From: Convolutriloba macropyga
Taxonomy: Eukaryota
NCBI RefSeq assembly: GCF_964194025.1
Contig: NC_134474.1
Coordinates: 47,554,001-47,618,000 of the forward strand
Direction: 5' to 3'
Length of the DNA: 64,000 bases
Positions 334 to 41,099 of the stretch are shown one piece after another; within the stretch, counting starts at the first letter, position 1, and each line of letters begins with the position of its first letter. Position numbers and translations under genes: made by a program. Below the pieces are notes generated by a model. The model had not been told where the DNA came from and searched no databases. It worked only from the letters and a program-made list of their open reading frames with translations.

Positions 334-1734
334 TTATTTTTTTGCGAAATGGCATTTGTTGAGGTTAAATGCCAGATTTTCTTCGTTTAGTCTGTCTAAG
401 CATTTGAATAGTTTTTCTTTATTGTTTTGTAGGCCGCCTCCGGTAACGATGATAATGTCATCTAGAAAACTGAATGTGTTTGTTAGATTGTATAAGGTTT
501 TGTCTATCGCTTTTTGGAATTCTGACGGCATGTCCGTTAGTCCGTAAAATCCGTTATTGAATCGATATGTTCCTGTGGTTTGGCCGCCTATAATATTGAA
601 GTTGCATTGTTTTGCTGTGTTTTCATCTAGTGGTATTTGGCTGTACGCGTAGCGTAAATCTCTTGTTGAGAATAAGATTTCTCCTTCGTCGGACAATTGA
701 GTGATGGTTTGGGCAATGTTGTCCATAAGGCAGTCAATGTTATGCATTTGATATTTGTTTTTATGAATCGCTTTGTTAATTGTTCTCGAGTCCATTGCTA
801 GTTTTTTTGATTTGTCCTTCTTCACTGTGATTACTATCGGTGAAATGAAAAATTCGTCGCTGCATTTTTCTAATCTAGTTATGTGTCCACTGTTCTGTAA
901 ACTTTTTAGTTCTTCTTCGACTTGTTTTTCGAGATGTAGGGGTACGCGTCTTCCCTTTTGGTGGACCGAGGTGTAGTTTGACTTAAATTGTGATTTTACC
1001 TTATGACGTATAGAGCGTCCTATCCTTGTTGTTAAGTTTTTGTATTTAATTGCTACTTCTTCCTTGATTGTGGGGGTTTGGAGTATGTTTATTGAATTGA
1101 TGCTCTTACTTGTAGATGTTGGTGAGTCGTTTTGTGTTAGTTGGATTCCCAGTGGTTTGAACAGGTCCCTTCCTACGATCGCTCGATGTTTTTTTGGGAC
1201 GACTATGATGTCCGCACGTCCTGCCTTCCAGCCGTTGCACTCGATATCGCAGTAAAGTGTTCCTAGATTCTTTATGGGGGCGTTCGTGTAGCTCATCAAT
1301 TTTACTGGGTTTGTTGTTCTGCTCCACCATGTCTTGCTGTCTCTTGCCTCTATGTCCTTCGCCATTTGTTCCGTGACGATACTAGTGGAGCTCCCTGAGT
1401 CAACCATTACCCAGAATTTGCTGTGGCCATACTGTATATGTAGCTTCGATGGTGTTGTGGAGTCGTCTGGTGTTTTCATCATGTTTACTGAGTAGTCATC
1501 TGCGGAGTCGTCGTATGTCGATTGGGTGTCCGGGTTGTGTGTGATCATGTTTATGCCTTGTGATGTTTGGTAAGGTCCTTGATTGTCGATTTGGTTTACC
1601 GATCTACTGGTTGTGGTCTGTTCAGGTTTGATCTGCAGACCTTTGCGAAGTGGTTCTGTTTGTTGCATCGACGGCATGTTTGACCTATTGCTTGGCATTT
1701 TGATCGATGATTCGCCTCCCAGGGTTGGCCGCAA
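334..1734 (-). pseudogene. pol: Gypsy pol fragment (aspartic protease + reverse transcriptase), frameshifted
   Basis: DSG protease motif followed by RT motifs including FLDD; protease-RT order is Ty3/Gypsy-like; premature stop at 334 caused by a poly-A frameshift. Confidence 0.88.
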
Positions 1735-10245: not shown

Positions 10246-10891
10246 ACTACAACAACTACTCAGTCCTCAGCCAACGCAGACTCAATGTCAGATGGTATCA
10301 TCACAGGAGAGGAAGCAGGAAATCCAGCGGCCGCCGATTTTGGACCATTAGCTGGCGACACAATCTACGACCCAGCTAATTCCTCCATTTCTGGAGAAAT
10401 TCCACTTGAAGACTTGTCATTCAAATTCGGGGACCTCTCTATCGACTCGTTGACCATCGGGTTCAATGGATATATTATAGAAGGAAGTTGTTCCAGTCAA
10501 GCTTTAGAACCCTCCGACTTCGATGACTCCACGCAGGTTATGATAGCAGGCGGGATGATGTCTTATACCAATCCGGGCGTTGCAGACGAGTTTAAAAACA
10601 AGATCTATTTCCGCCTTGTTGATGACAATGGACAAACTGAAGAATTGAACTCTTGCGTTGACGATGACCATTTTAAAGCCGATGCGGCTTTTGTAGTAAC
10701 TTGGTATAAAGTCGGAGATCTCGCAAATAATTCGACGTTTACTAATACATTTCAGGTTATAATTGCTTGTGATTTTGATTACAATGACACTGGTTTTCCC
10801 AGGTGTTTTCTGGCTTTCATATTTATGGAGATGAATTATGTGGAAACAGTTGCGGACTTCATCAGAGTTGGAATTAATGGACCTGAAAATG
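10246..10891 (+). CDS. NIDO-domain protein, main NIDO exon
   Basis: tttag acceptor, phase 0, in frame with ORF 10285. Motifs IGFNGYI, IYFR, AFVVTWYKV, TNTFQVIIACD, RVGINGPENG are typical of NIDO domains (nidogen, alpha-tectorin, SNED1, MUC4). g|gtaagc donor, phase 1. Confidence 0.85.
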
Positions 10892-11081
10892 GTAAGCTAC
10901 TAAGCTATTTTCTAATAACTTTCAACAATTTTCAGCAACGGCGGGTAAGTTGAACGCTCGCAACAGAATGTCGGTTTCCATTTTTTTAGGATCTGAGTAA
11001 AACTGCTTTTACGTAACTCTTGAAAAATGAGAGTGTCAACTTTTATTGTCCTGTAGTGAATCTGAATCGTTTTCAATGAAT

Positions 11082-18702: not shown

Positions 18703-19013
18703 TCATTTACTACAAATTATGAACCCTCGGTACGTGTCAACAGATCTATCCACTGTGTTCATGGCTGCACACATGTCACTGGCTTGGTACCAGGCATGTT
18801 TCATGAACTGGGATGGATCCAGAACCAGAATCATGTCCAGACCCTGATGGTACGCAGCTGCGACACTGTGGTGTCCGCTCTCTATGCAACACATGTGTAG
18901 CTTGGGTACCCAGTAATTGAGAAGCATGGCCTGGGGTTGCTGTCGGCTTTGACAACCTGAGTCTGAGCAGCATGTTAGAATGACTTGGTTGCGAAGGGTG
19001 TCCAGGTTGGCTT
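18703..19013 (-). CDS. PCS: Phytochelatin synthase-like protein (peptidase C83), exon 3, with catalytic His and Asp
   Basis: atttcag acceptor, phase 1. EANLDTLRNQV..MLLNYW..SGHHSVAAAYHQGLDMILVLDP..W..DMCAAMNTVDRSVDTYRGFIICSK* aligns with the PCS consensus GH(F/I)SP..AY....D..LILDV..W....LW.AM.TVD.....RGF. Confidence 0.88.
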
Positions 19014-19431
19014 CTGAAATTGAGATTTTTTTCGTTAACTTGCCTCCTGTCAGGTCAACTCTAATTTATTACTGTCCATTCAAAATTTTCAGGAATAATT
19101 TTCATTAGGTCGGTGCGTGTGCGTTAATGGCGAGACCACTATAAATGCTCAACGGTTAAAGTGTGTTGGATGAGCTGCACAGTTAAAATCTGTCTATGGT
19201 TTGATTATTTATGAGCCAATGTGATCGTTAGTGAGCTATGGTCTGATCATTAAGGAGAGCTGCTCGGAAGAATCTCGAGAGCAAAAATCGCTGCAAAAAA
19301 AAGAAAAAGCTTAATCGCCAAAACAACACAGACACCCACCCACCCACCCACAAACACACACACACACACGCAAACATGAACAAAAATAAACACATATGCA
19401 CACATAAACACAATAAACAACAACAACCCAC

Positions 19432-19509
19432 AGAACAACAGAACAGAACAGAACAGAACAGAACAGAACAGAACAGAACAGAACAGAACAGAACAGAACA
19501 GAACAGAAC
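19432..19509 (+). repeat. (GAACA)n pentanucleotide microsatellite abutting the PCS exon 2 donor
   Basis: About 14 tandem gaaca units. Confidence 0.95.
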
Positions 19510-19513
19510 TAAC

Positions 19514-19669
19514 CTTGCATGTGGTATGTAGTAGTGTTAGCACCATAGTGGTCAACGACCCTGCTGAGTGTGGTGAGGGGTATGCCTTTGCCCTCTACAC
19601 TCCCACTCGCGTACACACACTCAGAGAGACTCCTGTCTCCCAGCAGATCACAGTCACGAACTGTCCTAT
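19514..19669 (-). CDS. PCS: Phytochelatin synthase-like protein, exon 2 (absent from the ORF track)
   Basis: ttttag acceptor and caag|gttagt donor; 156 nt, phase 1 to phase 1, no stops. DRTVRDCDLLGDRSLSECVYASGSVEGKGIPLTTLSRVVDHYGANTTTYHMQ resembles the PCS segment V.EKGI.....LA...GA.V..F. Confidence 0.82.
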
Positions 19670-19866
19670 CTAAAACACTCAAAACGTATACTGTTAGAAG
19701 GCTGAGAGAGAGAGAACAACCTAATGTAAATTGTGCATAAGATAAGCTTCACGTAGCTTGACAAGAAGCTCTACTTGTTCAGCGTATACTTGGCTATAAA
19801 AATGAAGCCTTGAGGAACAAGAACGTGGGAACGGGTTATAAGAGTTGACCAAGTTTCAGAGCTTAC

Positions 19867-19939
19867 GACCAGTTGGTGTAAATGGGTAGCACAATAGGCT
19901 TGCAAGAAAGAGAAGCTGGTTCGAATCCAGCACTGGTCT
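19867..19939 (+). pseudogene. tRNA-like sequence (Ala-TGC-like); pseudo-tRNA or tRNA-derived SINE head
   Basis: Acceptor stem GACCAGT/ACTGGTC, D-stem GTGT/GCAC, T-arm GCTGG-TTCGAAT-CCAGC, loop CT-TGC-AA, but the anticodon stem (ATAGG vs GAAAG) cannot pair. Confidence 0.7.
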
Positions 19940-21872
19940 ATTTCACAGTAGTTGCACCTGCATATACCCTCTAACATTTTGCTGCTCTGGATCCGTGAAA
20001 GCTGCATCGGTCATTCGGCAATTTGTTCTAAGTTCCTGTAAGTTGCGGACAAAAAATTTTTATCGAGAAAGATTGTACTAGAGATTAAATTAACAATTAA
20101 TTACACAGTAGGAATGATTCCTATTTCGTGTTCAAAAGTCATTTCCTTTAATTCTTATAAATTTTAATTAAGTTTCTCTAGTTTTTTTTTTAAAATGCTT
20201 TCCATAAGATCTGATATGACACTACCGAGATTTTACAACATCATTCAGGACCTTCGAGACAAATTGTTTGTCCTGAAAGATTAACTTTTTAAGACTTTAT
20301 AAGACAATTTTATGACCAGAGAAAATATGGCTTCTTATAACATAGCCAGTGGGGCATCATTTACATTTTCATTAAAACTTTTGGTAAAAATGTCAACAAA
20401 TGTCACCTTAGAATTGACACTTGTAAAATGTTGTGTTCAAATGCTTGAGTTTATTCTTTTTGCGGTGCTGTAGGAATTAAAAAAAGATTTTTGGACTGCA
20501 AAACGATGTCAGTAAGAAGAACTTCTAAGATCTTAAACTTAAGTGCAACGATATTTGGAAAAAAAATCGCTCAAGAAAAAAGAAATAGTTAATGTAATTT
20601 TCAATCAGCTTTATATAGACATATGACGTCTGACGAAGTGTCGCCATATCTTACGAGATAAAAGTTTCTTAAGGCAGAATTATACAATGCATATTTTTTT
20701 ATTGTTTGAGATCTGATGAAATGTCTGACAGGGTGTTAGACAGGCAATGCGTAATGTGATAAATGCTGATAAAAATGTGCAACAGTTGCATGATCTTACA
20801 GGAAGAATATCATCAAGATACTGAGACAGCAAGCATTCCTTAATAAATAGAACTTAAATTAGCTACATTTCTGATAAGCATGTTTAAACTATTTTTCGAC
20901 ATATTCAATTCATCCATCGACTTTAAAGTAGCACAAAACAAAACTGATTTCAAAGAGTCCTTTTAAAATTTTACAAGCTGCATTTAATCTAATAAATTTT
21001 CAATTTTTGACGTTTTGTAGTGTAAGACGTGAAAGCACACCATACACGGGCAAGAACTGGTAAAATTTTGTTTCAAATGTTAGTGAGGTAGGTTAAGTAC
21101 AATTGCACAGGTACTTATTTCTTCAGCTCACGAGGTTAGGGCTGAAGATTTCTTTCATCTTTCAACTCAATTTTCGTCTTTCTCAGAATTTAGTTCAAGA
21201 TTACAAGATGTCGCAACCGCAGTGGATGGACCTGTACTGGATATTAACAAGAATATCTTAATTGCAAGCCGAATGTGCCAGCCATTACAATAATTGGTCT
21301 TAAAAGCTTTCAAACTCAAGTGTCTCTTACTCTTACAACCTATTTTTTTTGTTTCCTCAAGACCTGCCAAGGTTTACTTTTGAACAAGTCCAACTATTTG
21401 CAGTCATTTCAAAATTATGAGTATTTTCAAATTGATGTGTTACTCCGTTTTTCAGAGTGACTTTGTTAATTAATTACAGTCAGTTATACGAGCGTGACCA
21501 ATTTGTTGAATAATCATTGTAGTTAAAGTTTACAATCTCCAGTTTCAAACAAGAGCTCAGCTCCTTTCGAAAGATTGACGTCGGGGAGGTCCAATCAAAG
21601 TTTGTCTTTTCATTTTTGTACATGAGGACTTTTGCCTAGTCCGCAAACCCTGAAACTAAAATCTTATTTTTTGCATTTTTTAACAAACCGACATTTGCTT
21701 AGATAAATTGTTTTCCACCTGATCAATTTAGTGCTGATGACATGAAAGCCTTCCAACTATATTAAAAATTTAAACGCCGTTTTAGAATTGAAAAATTATT
21801 GTAAGCTCAACTAAAACTTAGTTGCTCTGGTTTGTTGTTGGTGTTGTATTTTTTTTAATCTTTCCACAGTAC

Positions 21873-22077
21873 CTGTGATTTGGAGTGCAGATAGAACACA
21901 AGCAGCAGCAGCATATCCACAGTAGCAGTACCCTATCTGTTTGTGGAAATGAGGCCACAGTTCGTTAAACTGGCTAGTCCCACTCTCTTCCGCCTCAGCC
22001 AACATCTGCTGGCCTCTCTCGCTCTCCAGAAGAACCCAGGGCTGTTGCTTCTTATCTTGGTTATTACAACCAGGCAT
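21873..22077 (-). CDS. PCS: Phytochelatin synthase-like protein, exon 1 (proximal copy), with oxyanion Gln47 and catalytic Cys53
   Basis: LESERGQQMLAEA..FHKQIGYCYCGYAAAACVLSAL matches PCS S.EG...L.EA..F.TQ....(F/Y)CG.A....VLNAL. cag|gtactg donor. Spliced CDS is 205+156+311 = 672 nt = 223 aa plus stop. Confidence 0.88.
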
Positions 22078-22158
22078 AGTTAGTAATAGTTATAATAAAT
22101 ATAAGTTGTCAACTCTTCTGCTGTCTTAAAGGTACGAGTGATTGACAAATAATGAAGA

Positions 22159-22191
22159 AGTTTTATACGTACGCTGTCTTTGATTAGTCAA
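22159..22191 (-). promoter_or_regulatory. Putative TATA-containing core promoter of the PCS-like gene (second copy ~25423-25455)
   Basis: Minus strand TTGACTAATCAAAGACAGCGTACGTATAAAACT about 85 nt upstream of the ATG. Confidence 0.45.
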
Positions 22192-23868
22192 ATTTAGTTG
22201 GATATAAAAGTTTTAACTTTCTGTTCAATATACCAAAAAAGCAAACCGAGCTTTTGTTTTGTTCTTGAATCAAATGACCACCTAAGTCTGTTCAAAAAAT
22301 GTTTCCTGTGACGAAAAACAAATTATGAAGGTCAGAAACTACACTTTGTTAGCTCGGTTGGTATAAATAAATCTTTAGAGTATAATGTTCGAATTAATTT
22401 TAAATTAAACATGATATCAGATATAAGTTGTCATACAATACAACAGGCGTTTAGTTATCGGCTTAAACTTGTTTGCAACTCAACAGGTAATCCAAATTAT
22501 TAATACGTTTGCGTAAATTTTTCTAATAGAAAGAACGTACTTAGTGCGAAACGCATTTTGTGTTAATACACGCCAAAAGTAAGAACACAAATTTGATCAA
22601 ATTCATAAACCGCGATTTGGTTTTGTGGAATTACAGGTCTAATAAAACAAGTCAAGCTGAAAATCTTTGCAAATACAAAATGCAAATTTCTTAAAATAGA
22701 AGAGTGCTCCAAATATTTGAGAGCGTGACGCTCGATTTTGGAGCAAGTCAAGCGTCAAACACTGGAACACATTTAGCCGTCCAAGGACTCTCAAGCAGGG
22801 AATCGCCTTTTTCCATGTTTTGCCATTCACTTATGGTCACTATAGTGCAAATAATTCCTCAGTTATGCAAAGCCGTTATAATTGAACGCAACATAAGTTA
22901 AAGTCTTGTAGCGTGCACATTGGGTGAAAATATTCATCCAAATGCACGCAATGTAAGTGAAAATTAGAGTTACTATCTTTCCTCTCCCTTCATGTCATAA
23001 ACCAATGACACACGCCTTAAGCCGGTAATAAAATGCACAATAACCGATTTGCATAATCACCCAAAGAAAACGTCCCGACAAAAACGATCTGAAAATTGAA
23101 TTTGGCAGTGTCCTGGTTAATTTTATCATTTTTGTTCACAAATTTGACTGACTGGAAAAGTTCATGACATAATTGAATTCAAAATCTTTTTTATTGCCAA
23201 AAGTTCTCATGTTGAATGTACTGAATTATTATAATCTTCGCATAATTTTCACATCAATCAACAAAGGTATGTGGCGTTTGTTTACCTATGTTCCGATCCT
23301 CTTTTATCCTCGTTTTTGACACAACTTATCGCCAAACAGAGCACTGATTATCATATCGTAAAGCGTTAGTTATTTGATTGAGCTTTAAAGTTTGATTGGG
23401 TTCCCAATTACGGATCTTCGAGGTCAACAACCGATCTAATATAAATTCTCGTAGCGTGAGAATAGGAAAAATCTTCAAAATATGATAAAAAAAATAGACA
23501 AATAATTGACTGAAAAAACTTGAAATTTACTTAAACATTAATCTCATGAAAATTCCATAGCCAAATACCATGTATTGTCCTGAAATTACCAAGAAATCAA
23601 ATGAGTTTTTACCACTCAAGTGCATTTCTTAACAGACTAACATTTTATCATTCTTTCTGATTATAAATGTACATTCTCCCACAATTTTGGTGCTTTTGAA
23701 AAAAAAATTGACAAAAACTGTGCCGACTACTGTGTTTAGCATTTATTGTAGATAAATGTCGTAAATAATCCCTAAAAAAATTATCTTAGCTATATTGTAC
23801 ACAAGAGAAAAATTGTTTAATTGACCAAATAAGTCAGCGACCTATATAAGTGATTGATGAAACAGAGG

Positions 23869-24967
23869 CACACATTAGCGATATATATCAACGAATGATT
23901 ATACAGTAAACCTACGTTACCAACATACGTCCGCAAATGTCGATGCAGCATCACACATTAGTGGCATTCATCAGCAAATTCTGATAGAGCAGCATACATT
24001 AGCTACATGTACCGGCAAGTGTTGACACAATATCACACTTTAGCGGCATTTATCAGAAAATTTTGATACAGCATCACATATTAGCGAATTGAAACAGCAA
24101 ATGTAGATTTAACCCGATACATTAGCGTTTTTCATCAGCAAAAGTTGATACCGCGTCATAAATTAGCGATAGACATCAGCAATTGTTAACACACGTCAAC
24201 GACAGCGGTTTTCATCAGCAAATGTTGATACATCAACATACATTTGCAATATTCATCCGCAAATGTTGACAAAGCATAACACTTTAGCGGCATGCATCAG
24301 CAAAAGTTAATACAGCATCATTCTTCAGTGAAAAACATCAACAAATGTTAACACACGTCAACATCAGCAGCTATCATCAGCAATTCTTGATACAGCAGCA
24401 TACATTAGCTATTAATATCATATATCCGCAAGTGTTGACACAGGATCACCCTTTAGCGGCATTTATAAGAAAATTTTGATACAACATCACACTTTAGCGA
24501 ATTGAATCAGCAATTGTAGATTTAGCCGAATACATTAGCGGTATTCATCAGCAAATGTTGATAACGCGTCATAAATGAGCGACAGACTTCAGCAAATGTT
24601 AACAAACATCAAAGTCAGCGGCTTTCATCAGCGAATGTTGATACATCAACATATAATAGCAACACACATCCGCAAATGTTGATACAGCATAGCATATTAG
24701 CGGCATTCATTAGCGAATTCTAATACAGCATCATTCTTTAGCAACAAACATCAGCCAAGTTTAACACACGCCAAAATCACAGGCTTCCATCAGTGAATGT
24801 TGATACCTCAACATACATTAGCAGCATACATCCGCAAATGTTGACAAAGCATAACACATTAGAAGCAAGCATCAGCAAACGTTAATACAGCATCATTCTT
24901 TAGCGACAAAAATCAGCAAATTTTAACAAACGCCAACATCAGCGGCTTTCATCAGCAAATGTTGATA
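23869..24967 (+). repeat. ~41-bp satellite, partial array copied by the duplication
   Basis: catcagcaaatgttgatacagcagcatacattagcgacata-like monomers. Confidence 0.92.
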
Positions 24968-25136
24968 AATTGTTTTCCACCTGATCAATTTAGTGCTGAT
25001 GACATGAAAGCCTTCCAACTATATTAAAAATTTAAACGCCGTTTTAGAATTGAAAAATTATTGTAAGCTCAATTAAAACTTAGTTGCTCTGGTTTGTTGT
25101 TGGTGTTGTATTTTTTTTTTAATCTTTCCACAGTAC

Positions 25137-25341
25137 CTGTGATTTGGAGTGCCGATAGAACACAAGCAGCAGCAGCATATCCACAGTAGCAGTACCCTAT
25201 CTGTTTGTGGAAATGAGGCCACATTTCGTTAAACTGGCTAGTCCCACTCTCTTCCGCCTCAGCCAACATCTGCTGGCCTCTCTCGCTCTCCAGAAGAACC
25301 CAGGACTGTTGCTTCTTATCTTGGTTATTACAACCAGGCAT
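25137..25341 (-). CDS. PCS: Duplicated PCS exon 1 (distal copy; potential alternative first exon, P13S and L40M)
   Basis: Near-identical to 21873-22077 with ATG, donor site and upstream TATA region intact; no dedicated downstream exons of its own. Confidence 0.65.
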
Positions 25342-27132
25342 AGTTAGTAATAGTTATAATAAATATAAGTTGTCAACTCTTCTGCTGTCTTAAAGGTACG
25401 AGTGATTGACAAATAATGAAGAAGTTTTATACGTACGCTGTCTTTGATTAGTCAAATTTAGTTGGATATAAAAGTTTTAACTTTCTGTTCAATATACCGA
25501 AAAAGCAAACCGAGCTTTTGTTTTGTTCTTGAATCAAATGACCACCTAAGTCTGTTCAAAAAATGTTTCCTGTGACGAAAAACAAATTATGAAGGTCAGA
25601 AACTACAATTTGTTAGCTCGGTTGGTATAAATAAATCTTTAGAGTATAATGTTCGAATTAATTTTAAATTAAACATGATATCTGATATAAGTTGTCATAC
25701 AATACAACAGGCGTTTAGTTATCGGCTTAAACTTGTTTGCAACTCAACAGGTAATCCAAATTATTAATACGTTTGCGTAAATTTTTCTAATAGAAAGAAC
25801 GTACTTAGTGCGAAACGCATTTTGTGTTAATACACGCCAAAAGTAAGAACACAAATTTGATCAAATTCATAAACCGCGATTTGGTTTTGTGGAATTACAG
25901 GTCTAATAAAACAAGTCAAGCTGAAAATCTTTGCAAATACAAAATGCAAATTTCTTAAAATAGAAGAGTGCTCCAAATATTTGAGAGCGTGACGCTCGAT
26001 TTTGGAGCAAGTCAAGCGTCAAACACTGGAACACATTTAGCCGTCCAAGGACTCTCAAGCAGGGAATCGCCTTTTTCCATGTTTTGCCATTCACTTATGG
26101 TCACTATAGTGCAAATAATTCCTCAGTTATGCAAAGCCGTTATAATTGAACGCAACATAAGTTAAAGTCTTGTAGCGTGCACATTGGGTGAAAATATTCA
26201 TCCAAATGCACGCAATGTAAGTGAAAATTAGAGTTACTATCTTTCCTCTCCCTTCATGTCATAAACCAATGACACACGCCTTAAGCCGGTAATAAAATGC
26301 ACAATAACCGATTTGCATAATCACCCAAAGAAAACGTCCCGACAAAAACGATCTGAAAATTGAATTTGGCAGTGTCCTGGTTAATTTTATCATTTTTGTT
26401 CACAAATTTGACTGACTGGAAAAGTTCATGACATAATTGAATTCAAAATCTTTTTTATTGCCAAAAGTTCTCATGTTGAATGTACTGAATTATTATAATC
26501 TTCGCATAATTTTCACATCAATCAACAAAGGTATGTGGCGTTTGTTTACCTATGTTCCGATCCTCTTTTATCCTCGTTTTTGACACAACTTATCGCCAAA
26601 CAGAGCACTGATTGTCATATCGTAAAGCGTTAGTTATTTGATTGAGCTTTAAAGTTTGATTGGGTTCCCAATTACGGATCTTCGAGGTCAACAACCGATC
26701 TAATATAAATTCTCGTAGCGTGCGAATAGGAAAAATCTTCAAAATATGATAAAAAAAATAGACAAATAATTGACTGAAAAAACTTGAAATTTACTTAAAC
26801 ATTAATCTCATGAAAATTCCATAGCCAAATACCATGTATTGTCCTGAAATTACCAAGAAATCAAATGAGTTTTTACCACTCAAGTGCATTTCTTAACAGA
26901 CTAACATTTTATCATTCTTTCTGATTATAAATGTACATTCTCCCACAATTTTGGTGCTTTTGAAAAAAAAATTGACAAAAACTGTGCCGACTACTGTGTT
27001 TAGCATTTATTGTAGATAAATGTCGTAAATAATCCCTAAAAAAATTATCTTAGCTATATTGTACACAAGAGAAAAATTGTTTAATTGACCAAATAAGTCA
27101 GCGACCTATATAAGTGATTGATGAAACAGAGG

Positions 27133-30100
27133 CACACATTAGCGATATATATCAACGAATGATTATACAGTAAACCTACGTTACCAACATACGTCCGCAA
27201 ATGTCGATGCAGCATCACACATTAGTGGCATTCATCAGCAAATTCTGATAGAGCAGCATACATTAGCTACATGTACCGGCAAGTGTTGACACAATATCAC
27301 ACTTTAGCGGCATTTATCAGAAAATTTTGATACAGCATCACATATTAGCGAATTGAAACAGCAAATGTAGATTTAACCCGATACATTAGCGTTTTTCATC
27401 AGCAAAAGTTGATACCGCGTCATAAATTAGCGATAGACATCAGCAATTGTTAACACACGTCAACGACAGCGCCTTTCATCAGCAAATGTTGATACATCAA
27501 CATACATTTGCAACATTCATCCGCAAATGTTGACAAAGCATAACACTTTAGCGGCATGCATCAGCAAAGGTTAATACAGCATCATTCTTCAGTGAAAAAC
27601 ATCAACAAATGTTAACACACGTCAACATCAGCAGCTATCATCAGCAATTCTTGATACAGCAGCATACATTAGCTATTAATATCATATATCCGCAAGTGTT
27701 GACACAGGATCACCCTTTAGCGGCATTTATAAGAAAATTTTGATACAACATCACACTTTAGCGAATTGAATCAGCAAATGTAGATTTAGCCGAATACATT
27801 AGTGGTATTCATCAGCAAATGTTGATAACGCGTCATAAATGAGCGACAGACTTCAGCAAATGTTAACAAACATCAAAGTCAGCGGCTTTCATCAGCGAAT
27901 GTTGATACATCAACATATAATAGCAACACACATCCGCAAATGTTGATACAGCATAGCATATTAGCGGCATTCATTAGCGAATTCTAATACAGCATCATTC
28001 TTTAGCAACAAACATCAGCCAAGTTTAACACACGCCAAAATCACAGGCTTCCATCAGTGAATGTTGATACCTCAACATACATTAGCAGCATACATCCGCA
28101 AATGTTGACAAAGCATAACACATTAGAAGCAAGCATCAGCAAACGTTAATACAGCATCATTCTTTAGCGACAAAAATCAGCAAATTTTAACAAACGCCAA
28201 CATCAGCGGCTTTCATCAGCACATGTTGATACAGCAGGAAACATTAACGACATACATCCGAAAATCTGGACAAAATATCACACATTAGCGGCATTTATCA
28301 GAGAATTGTGATACAGGATCACACAATAGCGAATCAGCAAATGTAGATTTAGTCGAATACAATAGCGGTATTAATCAGCAATTGTTGACGCAAAATCATA
28401 ATATAGTAACAGACATCAAAAAATGTTAACACACGTCAACATCGGCGGCTTTTATCAGTGAATGTTTATACAACAACATAAACTACCGACATACATCCGC
28501 AAGTGTTGACAAAGCATTGCATATTAGCGGCATTCATCATGAACACTAATACAGCACCATTCTTTAGCAACAAACATCAGCAGGTGTTAACACAGTTCAA
28601 CATCAGGGGTTTTCAGCAGCGAATACAACAACATACATTAGCAACAAACATCCTCACGTGTTGACAAAGCATAACACATTAGCGGCATGCATCAGCATTG
28701 GTTAATACGGCATCGTTTGACGTATTTGATAGAGCATCACACATTAGCGAATTGAATCAGCAAAAGTAGATTTAGTCGAATACAATAGCGGTATTCATCA
28801 GCAATTGTTGATGCAGAATCATAATTTAGCAACAGACATTAAAAAATGCTAACACACGTCAACATCAGCGGCTTTCATCAGCAATTGGTGATTCAGCAGC
28901 ATTCATTAGCGACATACATCGGCAAGTGTCGAAACAGTATCGCACAATAGCGGCACTTATCAGAGAAAATCGATACAGCATCAGACATTAGCAAATCGAA
29001 TCAATAAATGTTGGTTTATCCGAATACATTCAGCGGTTGTCATCAGCAATTGTTGATACAGAATCATAATTTGGAGACAGTCTGCAGAAAATGTTAACAC
29101 ACGTCAAAGTCAGCGGTTTTCATTATCAAATATTGATACATCAACATAAGTTAGCAATATACATCCGTAAATGTTGACAAAGCATAACACATTAGCGGCA
29201 TGCATCAGCAAATGTTAATACAGCATCAATCTTTAACGAAAATCATCAGCAAATGTTAACAAACGTCAACAATCAGCGGCTTTCATCAGCAAATGCTAAT
29301 ACAGCAGCATACATTAGCAACATACATTCGCAAGTGTTGACACAATATCACACAATAGCAACGTTTATCAGAGAATTTTGATACAGCATCACACATTAGC
29401 GAATTGAATCAGTAAATGTAGATTTAGCCGGATACATTATCGGTACTCTTCAGCAAATGTTGATACCGCGTCATAAATTAGCTACAGACATCAGCAAACG
29501 TTAACACTCGTCAACATTAGCGGCATTCATCAGCAAACGCTGATACAGCAGCATGAGTTTGAGACATGTATCCGCATGTGTTGACACAATATCACAAATT
29601 AGCGCATTGAATCAGCAAATGTAGATTTAGCCGAATACATTAGCAGTATTCATCAGCAAATATTGATACAGCATCATAAATCAGCGAAATATGTCAGCAG
29701 ATGTTAAAACACGTCAACATCAGCCGCTTTCGTCCGCGAATTTGATACATCAACATCCATTAGCAACATACATCCACAAATGTTGACAAAGCATAACACA
29801 TTAGCGGTTTGCACTAGCAAAGTTTCATGCAGCATCATTCTCTAGCAACAAATATCAGCAAATATTAACACACGCCAACATCAGCGGCTATGAATCAGCA
29901 ATTCTTGATACAGCAGCATACATTAGCTATATATATCATATATCCGCAAGTGTTGACACAGGATCACACTTTAGCGGCATTTATAAGAAAATTTTGATAT
30001 AACATCACACTTTAGCGAATTGAATCAGCAAATGTAGATTTAGCCAAATACATTAGCGGTATTCATCAGCAAATGTTGATAACGCGTCATAAATGAGCGA

Positions 30101-32415: not shown

Positions 32416-33393
32416 TCACGCATCTCTTGGGGTCAATTTCACATTGAAATTACGAGGTGACACTCCGACGAACCCAACCACAGGTGTCAAAGAGGGTTTC
32501 TCATCTCCAACAGCTTCTATTTTGTACTTCCTCACTATGGAAGCGAATGCCGAGAATACTTCCATCTTAGCAAACCCCTCCCCAAGACAAGATCTAGCAC
32601 CCATTGAAAAGGGGATAAGACAAGGATGTCGCTGAAACTTTCCGGACTCATCCAAGAAATTTCCTGGATCGAAGGATCCGGCATTCTTCCATCGCTTTTC
32701 GTCCCTGTAAAGGCACACTAGGTTAGGTATCATTCTAGTGCCTTTCGGGATGCGATAGCCGTGGAAATTTTCTATATCCTCATCTGCGGTGTGATCAATT
32801 GTTGAATAGAGCATAGGATAAACGCGCATAGTTTCATTAATAACTGCCAATGTATAGTCACAGTTACTCTGGACTGATAATGGAACAATTGGACTTTCAA
32901 GGTCAATTTTTGGTTTCAGCTCCTGATAAACATTTTCCTGAATGTCTGGGTAATGAATCATAACTAATACAAGCCAAGAGAGGGTATTAGTTGTTGTTTC
33001 CTGGCCTCCTAATATCAGGTCAACAAGGACACCGTGGGCACCTTTCTCATTGATTGTTGGATCGTTTTCGATCAAAATTTTGTCCCAGATATAATCAGAC
33101 ACACATTCCGGTTCTCGATTTCTGGCGTCTTGAGTTGAGTTTGGCTTTGTCTCTAGGAAATAGCCCATAACTTTGTGTTCGAATTGGGCTCTCAATGAAA
33201 GGAGTTCTTTCCCGATTGGCATGTGACGAGCAATGCACGTCGGAAGAATCCAGTGAATGCCCGTAGGATTCTGCAGTTCGGCTGTCCTGGCTAAGAAGTA
33301 GAAAGTTTCCAGATACTTTGGATCATTGTAGTCAAAAGTCTTATTGAAGACCATTTTGTACATCACGTTGTTTGTCATGTAACCTGCCAGTTG
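32416..33393 (-). CDS. Cytochrome P450 A (CYP2-like, clan 2), exon 2
   Basis: tttttag acceptor, phase 0 (QLAGYMTNN). I-helix GGQETT, K-helix ETMR, meander FDPGNF, heme motif FSMGARSCLGE. Confidence 0.95.
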   Translation of the reverse strand, partial: QLAGYMTNNVMYKMVFNKTFDYNDPKYLETFYFLARTAELQNPTGIHWILPTCIARHMPIGKELLSLRAQFEHKVMGYFLETKPNSTQDARNREPECVSDYIWDKILIENDPTINEKGAHGVLVDLILGGQETTTNTLSWLVLVMIHYPDIQENVYQELKPKIDLESPIVPLSVQSNCDYTLAVINETMRVYPMLYSTIDHTADEDIENFHGYRIPKGTRMIPNLVCLYRDEKRWKNAGSFDPGNFLDESGKFQRHPCLIPFSMGARSCLGEGFAKMEVFSAFASIVRKYKIEAVGDEKPSLTPVVGFVGVSPRNFNVKLTPRDA

Positions 33394-34603
33394 CTAAAAA
33401 GTGAACATTTAACTGTAAGAACAATTATGCTGGTTATATGGAAAATTTTCAAACAATATTTTTAATTCTTTTTCAATTTTAATGTCATTTAAAAGGCAAG
33501 AGCGAATTTTGGTTAGTGTTCTTGTTTACTATCCAAATAAAACATTGTTGATGATTCAAATAATTATTGCGGACACCTAGCAGAATGTGAAAAATCCCAG
33601 CGCCAAAAATCATATTTGCAGAATTAAGCGGTTTATAAAATCGATCTAATAATTAAAAATAATCTTTTTCCAGAAAAAGTACCCAAACAGTTTTAAAATT
33701 TTGTTGAGGCGACTCCAAATGTGTTTTTTATGAGTCTGCTCAGTCTTAAACCAAAATTACGTACCAAATTGTTGGATGGAAAATGGTTAGGTTAATCGTG
33801 GAACTAAGGGATCGAAAAAACATGATTTTCGTCATTCGTATTCACGGACAAACGTAATAAAAACCCACGACTTTGAGCATTCAATCGGGCTAAAATTTTA
33901 TAAACTGACTTAGTTACTATTATCTTAGTAACTACTTCAGACCCAGTTCAGAGACTTAATTGTTCCTGTGTGCAGTGATATGGGAAAATGTAAAACTGTT
34001 AATTATCTTTTAAATCCTCAATTAGCATTGCAAGGGACTTTTCTGAAATTTATCACTAATAAGGTTTCTTTCATTTTCGTGTAATTACCAAGATGCTAAT
34101 TATCTTGGTTAGAAACCGAGGGTGGCAATGATGGCATGGAATTTTGTGACGAGGAGTGGGATCTTTAAGCATGGTCATAAAAAATAGCAACAAACACTCG
34201 TGAGAAATTACTTTTAAAAAATGATATTTGCCACTTGATGAAAATAATTTAAAAAGAATTGAGTCCAGATTGCTATTGCTTGTCCTCTATGGGTTGCAAG
34301 AGCCGCCGGCATTAGCTAAATAAGAAACGTTGAATATTGAACAACAAAAAATGAATCTAATCCTCTTTGATCCAAACTATTTAGCAACAAGTAGAATCTG
34401 CAAGTGTAAACGTCCACATTAGCAAATAAAGCAGCTGTTATCAGACTTAAGGATTTACCATTTGTGTTAAACGATCAACATCATATGTTCCCAGATCTAA
34501 CTGGACGAATTGGCATTGACTTTGTTTGCAATCTGGTGCTCAAATTGTTTATTGTTTTTTTTTTGTTTTTCCATATAATGTCCTATCTCATACGCCCCAC
34601 TTC

Positions 34604-36615
34604 ATTGTTCCGACCCCTCTTGAGTGGGGGAGGAACTATATACTCAAATGGGTTTTTTTTGTTCAGTCATTTTTGGCCGATCGATATATTAATCGTAGAG
34701 AGTTGAGACTGGTATCTTTAGAAAGCTTGTCCAGCGTAGAATGTGGAATTAAAAAGATTTTTTTGATTTTCGTTTTTGACAGGGAGATATCGAGGTTTAA
34801 ACTTTCGAGCAAATAGAGTGAATTCCGTGATTTCATTCACCTTTTTTCGGAATTTTCGACTAAAATTTTGCACATTTGATAAAATTTAATAAAATTTTTC
34901 AGGAAAATGTTGTTGATTTTACGTTTAAAAACAAAATATATTGTCGGTTATTTTCATTGAATTTTTTTTTGTCACAAATTCCGGCTAAATATTTCACAAA
35001 ATTCAGACTTTTTCATCAAAAACAGCACGAAATAAGTTCCTTTAGTCCACTCTGATTAAATTTGCAGGAAGTGCACACCCAAACACCACTAACACAATCT
35101 TTGTAGACTGAAAAGGGGGCTAATTCCACTTCAACTTCCGTTGAGAGTGCTCTGTAAATAAAAATTTGCCGTTTTTTGCTAACTTTATTCGTTGAATATC
35201 AAAAACGCAGCATTTATTTCTGATTTTTTAACTAACAGAAAATCTATATCAATGACATTCCAAATATTAAATATTCCTAATGGACAATCAGCATTAGCAG
35301 AACTAGTTCTGTACCATTCTTGGACCGTTACAATCCAAAAATAATTCGGATTGTCGTCAGTCGGTTTTTTATTAAAAAAATTTGATCTTTTTTATATTAA
35401 TTAAATAACAGAACATTTCAAATCAAAGCTCACTAGTGATAGGTCTTATTGGCTTTATAATTAGCTCACAACTAATTTATCTAGTTGATTGCGTGAAAGC
35501 TCATGGTCATTTTGATTTTGAAATAAAAAATGGCTTATTGAACTTTGCCTCCATTTTTCTCTTAGTTTGGTCATTTTGGAGCTCAGTGTCAGCAATCAAA
35601 GAGTGCTCCTTCTTTCTGCTGAATTCAAGTGTAATCCTTATTGCGGTTTTACGCCTTATGTTATGGTGTTTTGGCTGTGATACTACTAGATTTCACAATT
35701 TTTTAAAAAATTCAAGGGCTTTCTTTGGAAGAGTGGTTGAACTTATTCAAATTTTTCATTTTGTAATTAAGGGCGTTCATGTCTTTGGAAAAAAATTTTT
35801 TTCGAAAAAAAACAAGTATTACATAATTTTGAATTTTGTTCTTTTTTGTCTAATTGTTGCTTATTTTCAATAATGAGTGGCCAAATAATACATTATCGAT
35901 TTTCGACGAAGGTGCAATCGAACATATTTTTTGGGCCAAAGTATGGCTTTACGGCTTCCAAAGCATTTTCTGGCAAGTTTTAATTGATTTTTAGTTTGTT
36001 GTCTATTTGTTTTTCTCTTTGTAACTGCATAAAAAATCAAATACCAAGAGTTCTTAATTCCCGTCTAAAGAAGTTTTGGTAATTGTAAACCATATGGGAT
36101 ATTTTAGTTGAATCCTAATGGCTTTCATTACTTTTTCTAACTCAGCGAATTTTCTAACTTTAAATTTTCTGTTCTTTTTTGTCTAATTTTTACCAAGCTT
36201 TATTATGAACTGGTGAATAACTATTTTTTTCTGGTGAATTACAAGTTATTTTGTTTATTTTCAGTTTTATCTGACGCTATTTTGACTTTGTTATTAAGTT
36301 CTGTTTTTTAAAACGGACTTGTTATAAATCATTTGATATAATAAATGTTTGTTGTTGTTGTTTGATTTTGCCGTTCGTCTTCGCCCGCTTTCCTAATATT
36401 GGCATATCTCATCAACCTAATGAATCATTTTTTACTCCACTGAGTTATTTGCTTTGTAGGCGATCTTTTCGTTCATACACCAGTATTTTTTGAAAAATAC
36501 TTGAATTTTTTGTGTTTTTCCATCTGTTCCTCATTTGGTAGACAATTATGCCAAAGTTGTGGATGAGCGGGGTCGGCACCTTATGTGCGATTGCACATTA
36601 CCGAGCCGCCTTGTT
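34604..36615 (+). mobile_element. Non-autonomous Helentron/HINE (DINE-1)-like element inside the CYP-A intron
   Basis: 5' subterminal ttgttccgacccc followed by a short inverted repeat; 3' ggggtcggcac (inverted subterminal repeat), hairpin atgtgc-gatt-gcacat and cttgtTT end. Diverged homologue at 49534-51892. Confidence 0.7.
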
Positions 36616-37819
36616 TCATTCAATTAGCATTTTTGCACCTACAGCAATCATTCCGGAATTTTTTGATATTGTGTCCAACACCATTGTGATATAAATTGAT
36701 CGGTTTGTTTTGAATGTCGTTTGATTCAAGGATAGCTTTTTCGATAAACAATTGTTCACCTCAAATAGCTCGAGCTCAAAAATTTCATTGATTTGCTTTT
36801 GCATAGTGTTAAATTTTCAACCATTTTTCTTTCAAAATTTTTTTTATTTTAAAAAAGGTTCTCGAAAAATTTCTGAAAGATGAAAAATTTTTGAGCTAAT
36901 AAGCTTGTCCAAGTTTAAAATGTGAAACTGTCTATGACGGTCAATCTTCAAATTTATGATAGGGTGAAGGCATAAATTCTCTCTGTACAGAAAACGCTTC
37001 TCTACACAATCTACGATAAAATGCATTAAATTGCTTAAGTTTTTTGCTGGTTTTGTAATGTTCATCATTATCTTTGGAGCTGGACAATAAAGCAAAATAA
37101 CCAGAACTCATTGTAGGATCCTACGTAGGCCTAAATTGTCCAAGATTGCTTCACTTTTGCTGACAAACGATCCTCAATTTTGTGAAAATTTTGATTTATA
37201 TGTTGCTTAATGTTTTTCATACAAATTATAAAGCAACCCTTTTTACAGGAAATGATTCCTAATGTTGCATGAGAAATTTTTGTGACTGTTTAGAGTGGCT
37301 TTAAAAAAATCTCAAACATGTAAATTCGAATAACCCCAAGGTTAAAGTTACATATTATGAATCAAACATACTACATCTTTCCCTTGAATAACTAAACATA
37401 ATAACAATAAAAACTAAGGTTCAGTTTCTAGTTCTCGTGAATTATGTTATGAAAATAAACTTTTAAAGCCTTCAATTTTTTTGTCCATTGGAACTCCTTC
37501 GTGTCTTTTTTGCATCTGTTCCTTTGATTCTTTTTTAAATATTTTCTTTGATTTTTCCTTTCTTAGAACTCTTGGACGTTTATTCCATTTCCGAACAAAG
37601 TTTCTTATAATTGAATTTTGACTCCATTTTGATTTACATTTTTTGTGAGAGAAAAATCATATGTACGATTATTAACTTTAATTTGAACGTCTCCGATTAT
37701 TCTGAATTTTCTTTGGTCTTGTAGGTTTGTTTGTTGGACAATATCGAAAAGTCTATTTAATGAAGTTTTTGCTATTTGAATTTCTGCGGGAAGTATTTTA
37801 TTTTCAAGAAGTAGTTTAC

Positions 37820-38317
37820 CCGTAAGCATATATCATCCTTCTTGTCTTCTTTCTCAATATGTTTCATAAACTTCTCCACCTCTGATTCCACCATTCCACC
37901 GTATGTATTCCGCCCAACGCCCATACTCCTGAAGATTTGAACGACAATTTTTCTCTTGCCCTTCCATGCCTCTCCGGAATCGAATGCTATGCCCTTGTCC
38001 AGTTCAAACAAAGTGAAAAACCCGAAGACCTTTCTACTGTTAAACCGACTATCGAAGAGAATCTCCTTGATGATGTCAAAGTCATTGACCCATACATCCC
38101 AAATATTTTTGCCCACTATGGACAGAGACACCATAGGTCCATAATCTTTGTGAAGTTTTTCCAGCTTTCCTATTAGGTGTTCATCCATGGAGACACTGAG
38201 TAGATTGTTGAGTAGAGGGAGGGCAATTGGTCCAGGGGGGAATTTGGATGGTCTGGATTTGGACCAGAACCAGGCCGTCACTAACCCAGCTGCTCCAGCT
38301 AGGTAATATTCTGCCAT
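37820..38317 (-). CDS. Cytochrome P450 A, exon 1
   Basis: MAEYYLAGAAGLVTAWFW anchor, PPGP hinge, WKGKR C-helix; cgg|gtaaac donor; 166 codons. Full protein 491 aa; intron 4426 bp. Confidence 0.93.
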
Positions 38318-41099
38318 ATTGCGCGTTCTTAACAAAAAGCTATGTGAAGCTGGTCAATGTTTGTTTTAAAGGGCAAACAAATCAGCAAATCTTGATGTTG
38401 AAGTGTTTAGCAAAATTATCATTCAGTCAATGATCATTTTAGACTTTGATATGTTTTAGCTGACAGCCGCTCTGATGAAGGTCTGAATGATTGGTCTTAA
38501 TTTCAACTTGTTATATCATTCAAAGGTCACTTCAGTTCAATGCTCTAAATATATTAAAAGATACTAAATTTACTGAACAACTGATAATCTAGGTGTCGTA
38601 CCAGATATCTGATTATTGTAACCATTGTTGCCAATCAAATGGTTTAAACTCCGCTAATATGGATTAGGCTGCAACGTTTGTGATTTGATTCTATATTAAA
38701 CAGACTTTAACTCAAACTGAGTCCACAGGTTGACCAAAGTTAAAGAACTTATGAAAGAAGGTTTGTTCAGCTTTAAACGATTAAAGGACAGCATACCAAA
38801 CAAATATCTGAAGAATAAGCTCAGAAGTATGGTGAAGTGCGCTGATGTATGATTGTTCCAAATTTTGCCTTTTCTGAAGCCTAGGTATAACATAGCTTTT
38901 GTCAATTTTTATCGCGTACAATTTTCAAGACAACCATTAGTTTTCCAAGAGTTTGTGACACTACTTATTGAGCGCGAAAAACAACGTCCTAGTGACCAGG
39001 TCAAAAAGTTGAAAAGTTGCAATATTTCAATGTACAAAAGTAGTATGATATATAAGCGGGAAGATGGGGATATCCTTCGAGATCATTTTGGTATAGGGAT
39101 ATAACTGATCCCGCAGGGGAGACCTTTTATGCTAAGAAACTGGTAATTGCGCTACAGGTATTTGTCTGGAAGGCTTATTGTTGGTATATATACTTCGCAC
39201 TATTAGTGAGCCATTCTAGTTTGTGAGCTAGATATGGGTGATCCTTCAAGTTAAAAGAGTTGTATTTTCGCTACATGTACTTGCGTGGCACGCCTATTGT
39301 CGGAAAATAATCATCCAGGAGGGGGAGGATATCCTAGGAGGTAAAATTTTGATAATTAAGATTCATTTTGTCAGAAAGTTATTTGGTGGAAGGGATGGCC
39401 AAAACGATGGCAACCATAGATCTGAAAATTTTTCTTGAAATTTACCTGCAGATAAGGAACAATTATCCAAAATATGATGAAAGGTTTGTATTTTTTGGCT
39501 GACTCTCAATACCGTGATCATGATAATTATTTGGAGTAAATATTGAAACTCAGACTGTTAGGAGGTGTAATTGGAATCGATAAATCATCGCTAAACAATT
39601 ACTTCAAATCGTTCAAAATAATTCGACTGGATGCAATACTCCATGACGCATCGGGGTTTTATAGCAGAATACAGTCCTAAAGACCCTGGATACTTCTGTG
39701 TGTTACCCTGGCTACAAACAAACGAATATTTGGGTCATATCACGGGAATGGCTCTTTTTCGTTTTTGTGAAGACGTTCAAAAAAATTTATTTTCAGTTTC
39801 TTGGAAGGCTGAAACAAAAAAATATTGTTATAAAAACTGGTCTTGTTACAAAAAACTAGTTTAATAAAAATAAAGTTATCGCTTCTTTCAAATATTTATT
39901 CGGACACAATTCTTTCCTTCCGCCAGTTTCCTACAATTTACTTTCCGCTAGTGAGTTAGTTGTTTACTAAATTTTGACAAGGTTTGTCTTGGAACAGCGG
40001 CACTAATCTGTACTTGTTTCTATCACAAATCTTTGTCGCAATTAAACTTTAGTTACCAATACGGAATTTTTTAACAACGGAAAGAGAATACAGAATCACT
40101 TCAAACAACGAGGAAACAATGAGCAAAAACGAAAGCACAGTGGTATTTCGGTTGGATCAGACTGCCATCTAATGAAGCGTCGAGTAGAGAAGGCGGCTTC
40201 TCCAGTTCTTCTAGTGAAATTATCTTCAAGTGTTACAGTGTGCAGTTACATAACGAATGATAATCAGTTGAAATTGACATAATTAAAAGAACAGAAAAAA
40301 GGATCACGGGACAGAATACTCTGTGAAAACAACAGATTCTCTGCAACACTGAGGAAATTGAGGCACTGAAGAAACATATTTCATTACTTGAATTTTTCCA
40401 AATAAGCCACCCTGTTGCAACAGGAAATGAGGAAATTGAAACCAATATCTTTAGCTAATCCCAAGTGGCCAATACTAGTTCAGGTACCTCTGGACGATGA
40501 CACTGTCCTTGATCAAATTAAAATGTTTGTCACTGACGGCAACGTAGAGTCTAGTGCAGGCAAACTACTAAGTATTATAAAAAAGACAATAAAGACTCCA
40601 ATTATACTACTTATGGCAACGTAGATTCTGTTGTCTACTATGGAAGTGGTTATGGCATGTAGGCATATCATAAAATGACTTAAAAAAGACGATAAAGACT
40701 CCAGATATAATACTTATGAATTCTTTTGACTGAAAGAAAGGATAACAAAAACGCAATATAAATTTAAACATCTGAGTGCCAATTCGATTTTGCGATTGTC
40801 TCCTTTTCAGGTGAGTGTTGTGGAAGACCAGATGGAATCCGCTACTGCCGGGGATTCGAAAGTTTCGGTTTCTGATGAGGAAGATCACAAGAGGCATTTG
40901 TAGATTTGTAGAAGCATTGTAATTCTCGCCTACCACGTTGCAAAGTCGTTCAATTTACTCAAATTGTAATAATACCTTTTTATTGTATTTTCATTAAACA
41001 GGCTTGTTTTCTAAACCCGATCGTGACGATTCAACATTTTGGTTTTCATTGCTTTCATGCACTGTTGGCTACGCTCCTCCAAATACAAAGCTATGAACA

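Follow-up and report, generated by a model that had tools for sequence, protein, structure and literature searches.

A three-exon animal gene for a short phytochelatin-synthase-like protein with a replaced acceptor cavity

What can an animal gene be doing that keeps the catalytic residues of a phytochelatin synthase (PCS) and has replaced the residues of its second-substrate cavity? The question is raised by a gene on the minus strand, at 18703-22077, of a 64,000-nt stretch of contig NC_134474.1 (positions 47,554,001 to 47,618,000), which we call the window and in whose numbering coordinates are given. A reading made from the DNA sequence only had proposed here a hidden three-exon, half-size PCS-like enzyme with an intact catalytic triad and a rewired substrate site. 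The comparisons reported below lead us to consider it reasonably likely that this is a functional nuclear host gene, the host probably belonging to the acoels or close to them, and that its product, a cytosolic 223-aa protein made up of the PCS catalytic domain, would act as a deglycinating cysteine peptidase on glutathione or its conjugates and not as a phytochelatin polymerase.

Gene structure

When 22077-21873, 19669-19514 and 19013-18703 are spliced (reverse complement), they give 672 nt without an internal stop, that is 223 codons and a TGA. The splice donors are GTACTG and GTTAGT, the acceptors ...TTTTAG and ...TTTCAG lie at the end of T-rich tracts, and both introns are in phase 1. The parts of the gene are as follows.

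Exon 1, 21873..22077 (-): codons 1-68 plus 1 nt, start ATG at 22077-22075; oxyanion Gln47 and catalytic Cys53 in the motif KQIGYCYCGY; PF05023 match
Intron 1, 19670..21872 (-): phase 1, GT..AG, with a repeat resembling a short interspersed nuclear element (SINE) inside
Exon 2, 19514..19669 (-): 156 nt, helical middle part of the catalytic domain
Intron 2, 19014..19513 (-): phase 1, GT..AG, with a (GTTCT)n microsatellite from the donor onward
Exon 3, 18703..19013 (-): His168, Asp186, Asp209 and Arg216-Gly-Phe, stop codon at 18705-18703; PF05023 match
Replaced positions in exon 3 (AtPCS1 numbering for the residues lost): Val155 for Arg152, Met160 for Gln157, Ser188-Gln-Phe-Met for Arg183-Phe-Lys-Tyr
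Second copy of exon 1, 25137..25341 (-): intact, inside a 3264-bp tandem duplication

Re-splicing recovered everything that the sequence-only reading had listed for the protein, namely three phase-compatible exons, a stop-free frame of 223 codons, the oxyanion and triad residues Gln47, Cys53, His168 and Asp186, 13 Cys (residues 4, 51, 53, 60, 75, 86, 135, 136, 141, 162, 163, 202 and 221) and an end near the RGF motif, which is followed by five more residues. The border of exon 1 at 21873 was also placed correctly, the frame staying open when the exons are joined there. A further exon adding a C-terminal domain was looked for by tblastn of the 223-aa model against the whole window, which returned no homologous exon except the second copy of exon 1, and the relatives of the protein end at the same place. 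Four DNA sequencing runs over the locus have a flat depth of 38-68x across exons and introns alike, with no splice joints.

Closest relatives and shared introns

The closest full-length relative is XP_075247163.1 (LOC142340473; P0061 below), an uncharacterised protein of 264 aa from the acoel Convolutriloba macropyga, which aligns with residues 13-223 of our model (E 8e-54) at 38% identity by BLASTP of the whole model and at 45-46% over aligned columns. Exon 1 is 58% identical to the first exon of the corresponding Convolutriloba gene (locus L003) and ends at the same residue (ALKIT / ALQIT), the second exons end at FYPMK in L003 vs TYHMQ, and the last exon of L003 begins at the homologous position. 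A prokaryote-style gene call on the L003 DNA (P0062) runs into the intron exactly there. Two contigs of one metagenome, L001 and L002, carry the same three exons separated by short introns; in L002 the GT/AG borders yield a 217-aa protein, with an exon 2 of 156 nt and both introns in phase 1, as in the window gene. Both intron positions are thus common to the window gene, the Convolutriloba RefSeq gene, L001 and L002, and we refer to these four as acoel-type genes. By comparison with these loci, we regard the window gene as a real three-exon animal gene; the proposal made from the sequence, that an animal gene with introns encodes a PCS-like protein limited to the catalytic domain and with its triad intact, is borne out by the splice model, the Pfam matches and the alignments.

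P0061 resembles the window protein in its start region, in the two intron positions, in the triad, in ending a few residues past RGF, and in the replacement of Arg152 (by Cys) and of Gln157. It differs in having an extra exon of 48 aa in the RefSeq model and in being without the extra Cys pairs of the window protein. The extra exon of XP_075247163.1 lies at L003 7093-7236 (OZ077303.1) and is absent in the other three acoel-type genes. A homology search with P0061 gave only 13 matches, each covering 21-23% of the query at 66-75% identity, and because these matches cover about the length of the extra exon only, this exon appears to be a dispersed repeat, probably exonised or else annotated in error.

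Family assignment and fold

Pfam scans of the window protein were done exon by exon, with 24.9 bits as the cut-off of PF05023. Exon 1 reached 34.7 bits (E 1.4e-8, profile positions 9-64 of 210) and exon 3 reached 42.7 bits (E 4.8e-11, profile positions 134-210 of 210), so that the Phytochelatin profile is matched above its cut-off by both; as each exon does so independently, chance is excluded by the profile scores as the origin of the PCS-like match. Exon 2 alone had no Pfam match, and by tblastn it aligned to exon 2 of L003 with E 4.5e-8; exon 2 of L002 is likewise a match. Gln47, Cys53, His168 and Asp186 align with Gln50, Cys56, His162 and Asp180 of a Brassicaceae PCS colinear with AtPCS1. 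For exon 3 the best solved relative in the PDB is Nostoc Alr0975, and the alignment reaches the last residue of both proteins, each ending in ...SK. The N-terminus of the window protein is hydrophilic and, judged by eye, carries no hydrophobic signal. Taken at the level of these alignments, the window protein is a catalytic-domain-only member of Pfam PF05023 / MEROPS C83, presumably with a papain fold.

A structure was predicted with AlphaFold2 for P0061 from a 39-row alignment that included translations of the three exons of the window. The model has a pLDDT (predicted local distance difference test) of 85.9 and a pTM (predicted template modelling score) of 0.81, and its confidence is low only in the extra 48-aa exon (pLDDT <50, predicted disordered). 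A Foldseek search of this model against the PDB ranked the structures of Alr0975 at the top, among them 2bu3 and 6tho, both acyl-enzyme forms, with a template modelling score (by target) of 0.85-0.90, a root-mean-square deviation of 2.0 Å and 19% identity, and staphopains and C39 peptidases followed far behind. The overlay on Nostoc PCS that the sequence-only reading had in view thus gives a matching fold for the relative P0061.

Active site and substrate cavity

The six residues of the canonical acceptor (second-substrate) cavity, Arg152, Gln157, Arg183, Phe184, Lys185 and Tyr186 in AtPCS1 numbering, are all replaced in the window protein; for Arg152, Gln157, Phe184, Lys185 and Tyr186 the replacements are Val, Met, Gln, Phe and Met, respectively. 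The motifs YWV, GHHSV, MCCIES and DPSQFMKHA, which had been put forward as the altered ones, are all present. Asp209 and Arg216 are kept; they correspond to Asp204/Arg211 of AtPCS1 and Asp225/Arg232 of the Nostoc enzyme, and are conserved in nearly all PCS-family sequences that we tabulated. Vivares and colleagues are reported to have found in 2005 that the gamma-Glu moiety of the Nostoc acyl-enzyme is bound by Asp225 and Arg232.

Nostoc, plants and C. elegans all have the same, strictly conserved residues in the acceptor cavity, and in AtPCS1 the changes R152A/K/H and K185A/R/H leave 0.01-0.56% activity, mutants of Q157, F184 and Y186 being also very low (PMC3855540). Of the proposed rewiring of the substrate site, the replacement of the acceptor-cavity residues stands, and what does not is its being private to this protein, since it is mostly a hallmark of a family of short eukaryotic proteins described in the next section.

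Of the Cys clusters, TCCS has a single Cys that all four acoel-type genes have in common; no Cys of MCCIES is common to them, and neither is the extra one of YCYC. Gating of the enzyme by its own Cys clusters, which had been suggested, is left without comparative support, and we rejected it: as clusters they are private to the window protein.

A short eukaryotic PCS-like family

A HMMER scan of 1.84 billion representative proteins with exon 3 gave 60 matches, none of them near-identical to it (the best are 37-48% identical), so the window protein itself is absent from that set. Many proteins of 205-250 aa align with the model at 25-30% identity, and wherever a member of this short family could be identified taxonomically it was a eukaryote. 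Names were obtained from cluster look-ups and a profile search, and include the following short PCS-like proteins.

Strongylocentrotus purpuratus (sea urchin), XP_790643.2: 221 aa, annotated 'glutathione gamma-glutamylcysteinyltransferase 2'
Lytechinus variegatus, P0090: 221 aa
Diadema antillarum, P0093: 220 aa
Amphiura filiformis (brittle star), P0092: 219 aa
Saccoglossus kowalevskii (acorn worm), XP_002730372.1: 206 aa
Didymoeca costata (choanoflagellate), P0032: 211 aa
Gocevia fonbrunei (amoebozoan), P0044: 218 aa
Bolivina argentea (foraminifer), P0006: 252 aa

The idea of a hidden singleton did not hold: the databases already contain the family, with entries from sea urchins, a brittle star, Saccoglossus and protists, and the window protein is one of its divergent members. 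An alignment of 44 sequences separated three sequence types by their motifs.

Canonical PCS type: SYHR..FKQTG.GHFSP and DVARFKYPPHW
Bacterial type: N-terminal hydrophobic leaders, NY.R..LGQ..GH.SP and DVAR(F/Y)KYP
Short eukaryotic type, N-terminal part: KQ at the oxyanion site and NYHM (NYDE in echinoderms) in place of the Arg152 motif
Short eukaryotic type, C-terminal part: a longer loop before the catalytic His, and D(T/V)WP in place of DVARFKYP, one residue shorter

Like the short type, the four acoel-type proteins have the Lys-Gln pair, one residue fewer after the catalytic Asp and the longer loop between Tyr150 and His162, and they have lost Arg152 and Phe-Lys-Tyr. Position 152 is Val, Cys, Cys and Trp in the four. 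They are without two further residues of the family, Gln157 and Trp183, for which the window protein has Met160 and Ser188 and its relatives Leu or Val and Tyr or Ser. The short family has 18 invariant residues; 17 of them recur in the window protein, and at the remaining site Asp stands for Glu, a conservative change.

The echinoderm and hemichordate proteins show best what is shared and what is not. Like the window protein, they consist of the catalytic domain only, are without a signal peptide, have Lys or Glu before the oxyanion Gln, Met or Glu for Arg152, no Phe-Lys-Tyr, and the one-residue deletion after the catalytic Asp, and they lie on the same side of the 99/95 branch described below. 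Unlike it, they keep Gln157 and Trp183, have an intronless coding sequence, and are only 25-29% identical to it. The intronless coding sequences, which set them apart from the acoel-type genes, were seen in S. purpuratus (L004 2001-2666) and Saccoglossus kowalevskii (L005 2001-2621). Another short-family member, P0021, is on an assembly contig where it adjoins a retroelement lacking long terminal repeats (non-LTR).

Five of the exon-3 HMMER matches (P0005, P0017, P0024, P0015 and P0037) are proteins of 489-660 aa that match the query in one or two stretches. In P0005, P0015 and P0037 the model aligns at two separate places each, which gives two PCS-like domains, and P0005, P0017 and P0024 are of the type with Trp183 and without Arg152. 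From these features, the short type also occurs in larger and in tandem-domain architectures.

Half-size PCS-like proteins as such are known from bacteria, algae and Tetrahymena (PMC11314372; PMC13604404), and two sea urchin genes appear in a published tree as 'Sp1 and Sp2', the short form passing without comment (PMC3838358). We found no paper on the short subfamily lacking Arg152 or its occurrence in several animal phyla, nor on any PCS-like gene in acoels, in a literature search that lay mostly outside subscription journals.

Phylogenetic placement

Trees were built with IQ-TREE under LG+C20, with a canonical set composed of plants and protists; the homology search for canonical sequences had yielded mostly plant proteins, otherwise metagenome or protist entries, and no canonical PCS of an animal. 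In the tree of all rows the acoel pair joined the long branch of P0040, with a long-branch warning. When the longest rows were removed, a branch of 100/99 set the acoel and short-type sequences together on one side, and in a tree with all four acoel-type sequences, to which the two spliced metagenome models had been added, acoel and short type were opposite the bacterial and canonical sequences across a branch of 99/95. The canonical clade (100/100) leaves out the acoel clade, and the window protein was outside it in three trees. Approximately unbiased (AU) tests reject none of the alternative placements. Because the best tree and the shared indels and motifs, to which we give equal weight, point the same way, we take the acoel clade for a probable derived branch of the short eukaryotic subfamily, or possibly its sister group.

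Selection

Among the four acoel-type genes the proportion of nonsynonymous differences (pN) is 0.30-0.43 vs a proportion of synonymous differences (pS) of 0.78-0.89; synonymous sites are saturated in every pair, for which dN/dS is not computable. The low pN against a saturated pS indicates, at the level of these sequences, long-term purifying selection on the acoel-type genes.

Proposed activity

We hypothesise that Cys53 would attack the Cys-Gly bond, be it in glutathione, in one of its S-conjugates or in a similar gamma-glutamyl peptide, and that a gamma-Glu-Cys thioester would form on Cys53, as it does in Nostoc Alr0975. With the acceptor site gone there would be no transfer to a second glutathione, and because of this loss water would resolve the intermediate, so that the net activity in the cytosol would be that of a deglycinating peptidase. 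Some Nostoc PCS-like enzymes are biosynthetically inactive and hydrolyse glutathione, and a pseudo-PCS of Tetrahymena is apparently inactive in phytochelatin synthesis (PMC13604404). The Tetrahymena thermophila protein, which has been likened to the glutathione-hydrolysing Nostoc enzymes (PMC13604404), would be a functional precedent among eukaryotes, in a comparison made by description and not by sequence. Glutathione S-conjugates, too, are processed by PCS enzymes (PMC3561135).

Alr0975 of Nostoc sp. PCC 7120 (NsPCS; 2bu3, 6tho, 6tjl) is the best model for a glutathione-hydrolysing mechanism. It is likewise a catalytic domain only, with the same C-terminal end, and it shares with the window protein the Gln/Cys/His/Asp residues and the pair Asp225 and Arg232, its fold matching the one predicted for the acoel relative P0061. 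NsPCS differs in keeping Arg173, Lys206 and Tyr207, all three replaced in the window protein, and identity is about 19%; the bacterial-type sequences of our alignment have N-terminal hydrophobic leaders, and the window protein has none. The canonical enzymes (AtPCS1, C. elegans PCS-1; PF05023 + PF09328) have a homologous catalytic domain, an identical spacing of 18 residues from His to Asp and the Tyr before the catalytic Cys, and the window protein departs from them in its six cavity residues and in being without the C-terminal Cys-rich domain (PF09328).

Several points weigh against the deglycinase reading. No RNA runs for the source genome were listed in our search, the four runs that cover the region being DNA, which is why support for the gene model was taken from comparison with other loci. 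The predicted structure is that of P0061 and not of the window protein, and the literature search found no assay of any short-family member. The stem of the acoel clade is very long (2.2-3.2 changes per column), AU tests do not reject its being sister to the canonical clade (p 0.54 and 0.25), nor, in the two-sequence run, its union with the six bacterial-type rows (p 0.40). The authors of the mutagenesis study cautioned that cavity mutations might disturb the first substrate site as well (PMC3855540), and therefore loss of the cavity residues could change or abolish donor binding too. Finally, in the haplotype of run X3 exon 3 carries Q145R, G178S, Q197R and one silent change, three of these four changes being also in X4, at a variant density similar to that of the adjacent intron; recent constraint may be weak, in numbers that are tiny and too small for claiming relaxed constraint.

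Among the alternatives, the one that fares best is an active cysteine peptidase or transferase on a substrate other than glutathione, for instance a different thiol peptide, or a gamma-glutamyl or isopeptide bond that is linked to a protein. The loops that line the pocket differ at six positions, the acoel clade has further lost Gln157 and Trp183, its long stem suggests a functional shift, and the remote structural neighbours are C39-like and staphopain-like peptidases. The retention of Asp209 and Arg216 argues instead for a conserved donor moiety, and the data of this analysis indicate no candidate for another substrate. A non-glutathione substrate, which the sequence-only reading had raised, is thus possible and, given Asp209 and Arg216, unneeded; we hold it to be unlikely.

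We think it rather improbable that the gene is decaying or a non-catalytic remnant, with an open frame kept by chance or recently released from constraint. Between individuals, exon 3 shows three replacements and one silent change, at about the density of the flanking intron, which would fit such a gene, as would the lack of transcript evidence and the unusual Cys-rich replacements that relatives do not share. Decay is hard to reconcile with 672 nt free of stops and frameshifts, splice sites that are all intact, the retention of the whole triad and of 17 of the 18 family invariants, and a pN far below pS over deep time.

An ordinary phytochelatin synthase, polymerising gamma-Glu-Cys from glutathione in response to metals and differing only by the lack of the regulatory C-terminal domain, is slightly less probable still. 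Membership in PF05023 and the intact triad would agree with it, Tyr52 stands before the catalytic Cys like Tyr55 of AtPCS1, the AU test keeps a sister relation to the canonical clade, and truncated plant PCS is still active. Against it stand the replacement of all six cavity residues, when single changes of R152 or K185 leave <1% of AtPCS1 activity (PMC3855540), the exclusion of the window gene from the canonical clade (100/100), and the Nostoc PCS, which keeps these residues and yet is mainly a hydrolase (PMC13604404).

Recent horizontal acquisition from a bacterium or an algal symbiont, or contamination, is very improbable, its bacterial-type architecture of a catalytic domain ending where Alr0975 ends, the patchy distribution of the short family and the intronless coding sequences of sea urchin and Saccoglossus being set against two spliceosomal introns with positions conserved in four loci, a high-copy host SINE in intron 1, P450 genes and retroelements as neighbours, short-family members that were eukaryotes whenever identified, two other members on contigs of an assembly or a metagenome, of which one (P0021) adjoins a non-LTR retroelement, and the 99/95 branch that sets bacterial and canonical sequences apart from the acoel clade. 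A recent horizontal origin of the window gene, which had been thought possible, is not supported by these comparisons, since it runs counter to the shared introns, the SINE, the even read depth and the placement with eukaryotes in the best tree. Contamination was ruled out by a read depth even with that of the flanks and by the host SINE.

For the short PCS-like proteins without Arg152 in acoels, echinoderms, hemichordates and protists, we propose, tentatively, that they may form a functionally distinct enzyme class, cytosolic deglycinases of gamma-glutamyl peptides or glutathione conjugates or else enzymes with a new thiol-peptide substrate, within which the acoel pocket would have been remodelled further (loss of Gln157 and Trp183) towards a lineage-specific substrate. 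Animal PCS genes are usually read as proof of phytochelatin production, and some of them carry the automatic annotation glutathione gamma-glutamylcysteinyltransferase without having residues on which, by mutagenesis, phytochelatin synthesis depends; such genes probably have another role, in the metabolism of glutathione or of xenobiotics. If this is true, animals have a second PCS-derived enzyme activity and the annotations need correction. The window gene is a new, strongly diverged variant, and the signature at the level of the family is the most useful result.

Genomic surroundings

The tandem duplication of 3264 bp (window 21702-28229, 99% identity) has copied a 41-bp satellite array along with exon 1 and the region upstream of it. 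In the second exon 1 (25341-25137) the GT donor is unchanged; P13S, L40M and one silent change set this copy apart from the first, and it may serve as an alternative first exon. Reads lie over 21702-22200 at a depth of 1.3-1.7x, and exactly at 21702 a contig breaks, which together fit a real repeat and not an assembly artefact.

The repeat in intron 1 is a SINE-like element derived from a tRNA, at about 19689-20051, with an Rfam tRNA match at 19867-19939 (+). Its depth in the contigs of the runs is 1e3-9e4 vs about 50-70 in the flanks, which places it among the most abundant repeats of the source genome. In the stretch 19440-19512 the (GTTCT)n microsatellite starts right at the donor of intron 2 and gives way to GT-rich simple sequence, and the Logan contigs of all four runs break near this donor, at 19321-19520.

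Two cytochrome P450 genes lie near the PCS-like gene in head-to-head arrangement (window 32416-38335 (-) and 43774-47199 (+)), each seen as a 5' open reading frame (P450 profile positions 1-136) and a 3' one (positions 148-450). These neighbours would fit a role in xenobiotic metabolism, proximity being weak as an indication. Elsewhere in the window there are a reverse-transcriptase reading frame (RVT_1) at 334-1734 (-) and, at 10285-10953 (+), a reading frame with a NIDO (nidogen-like) domain.

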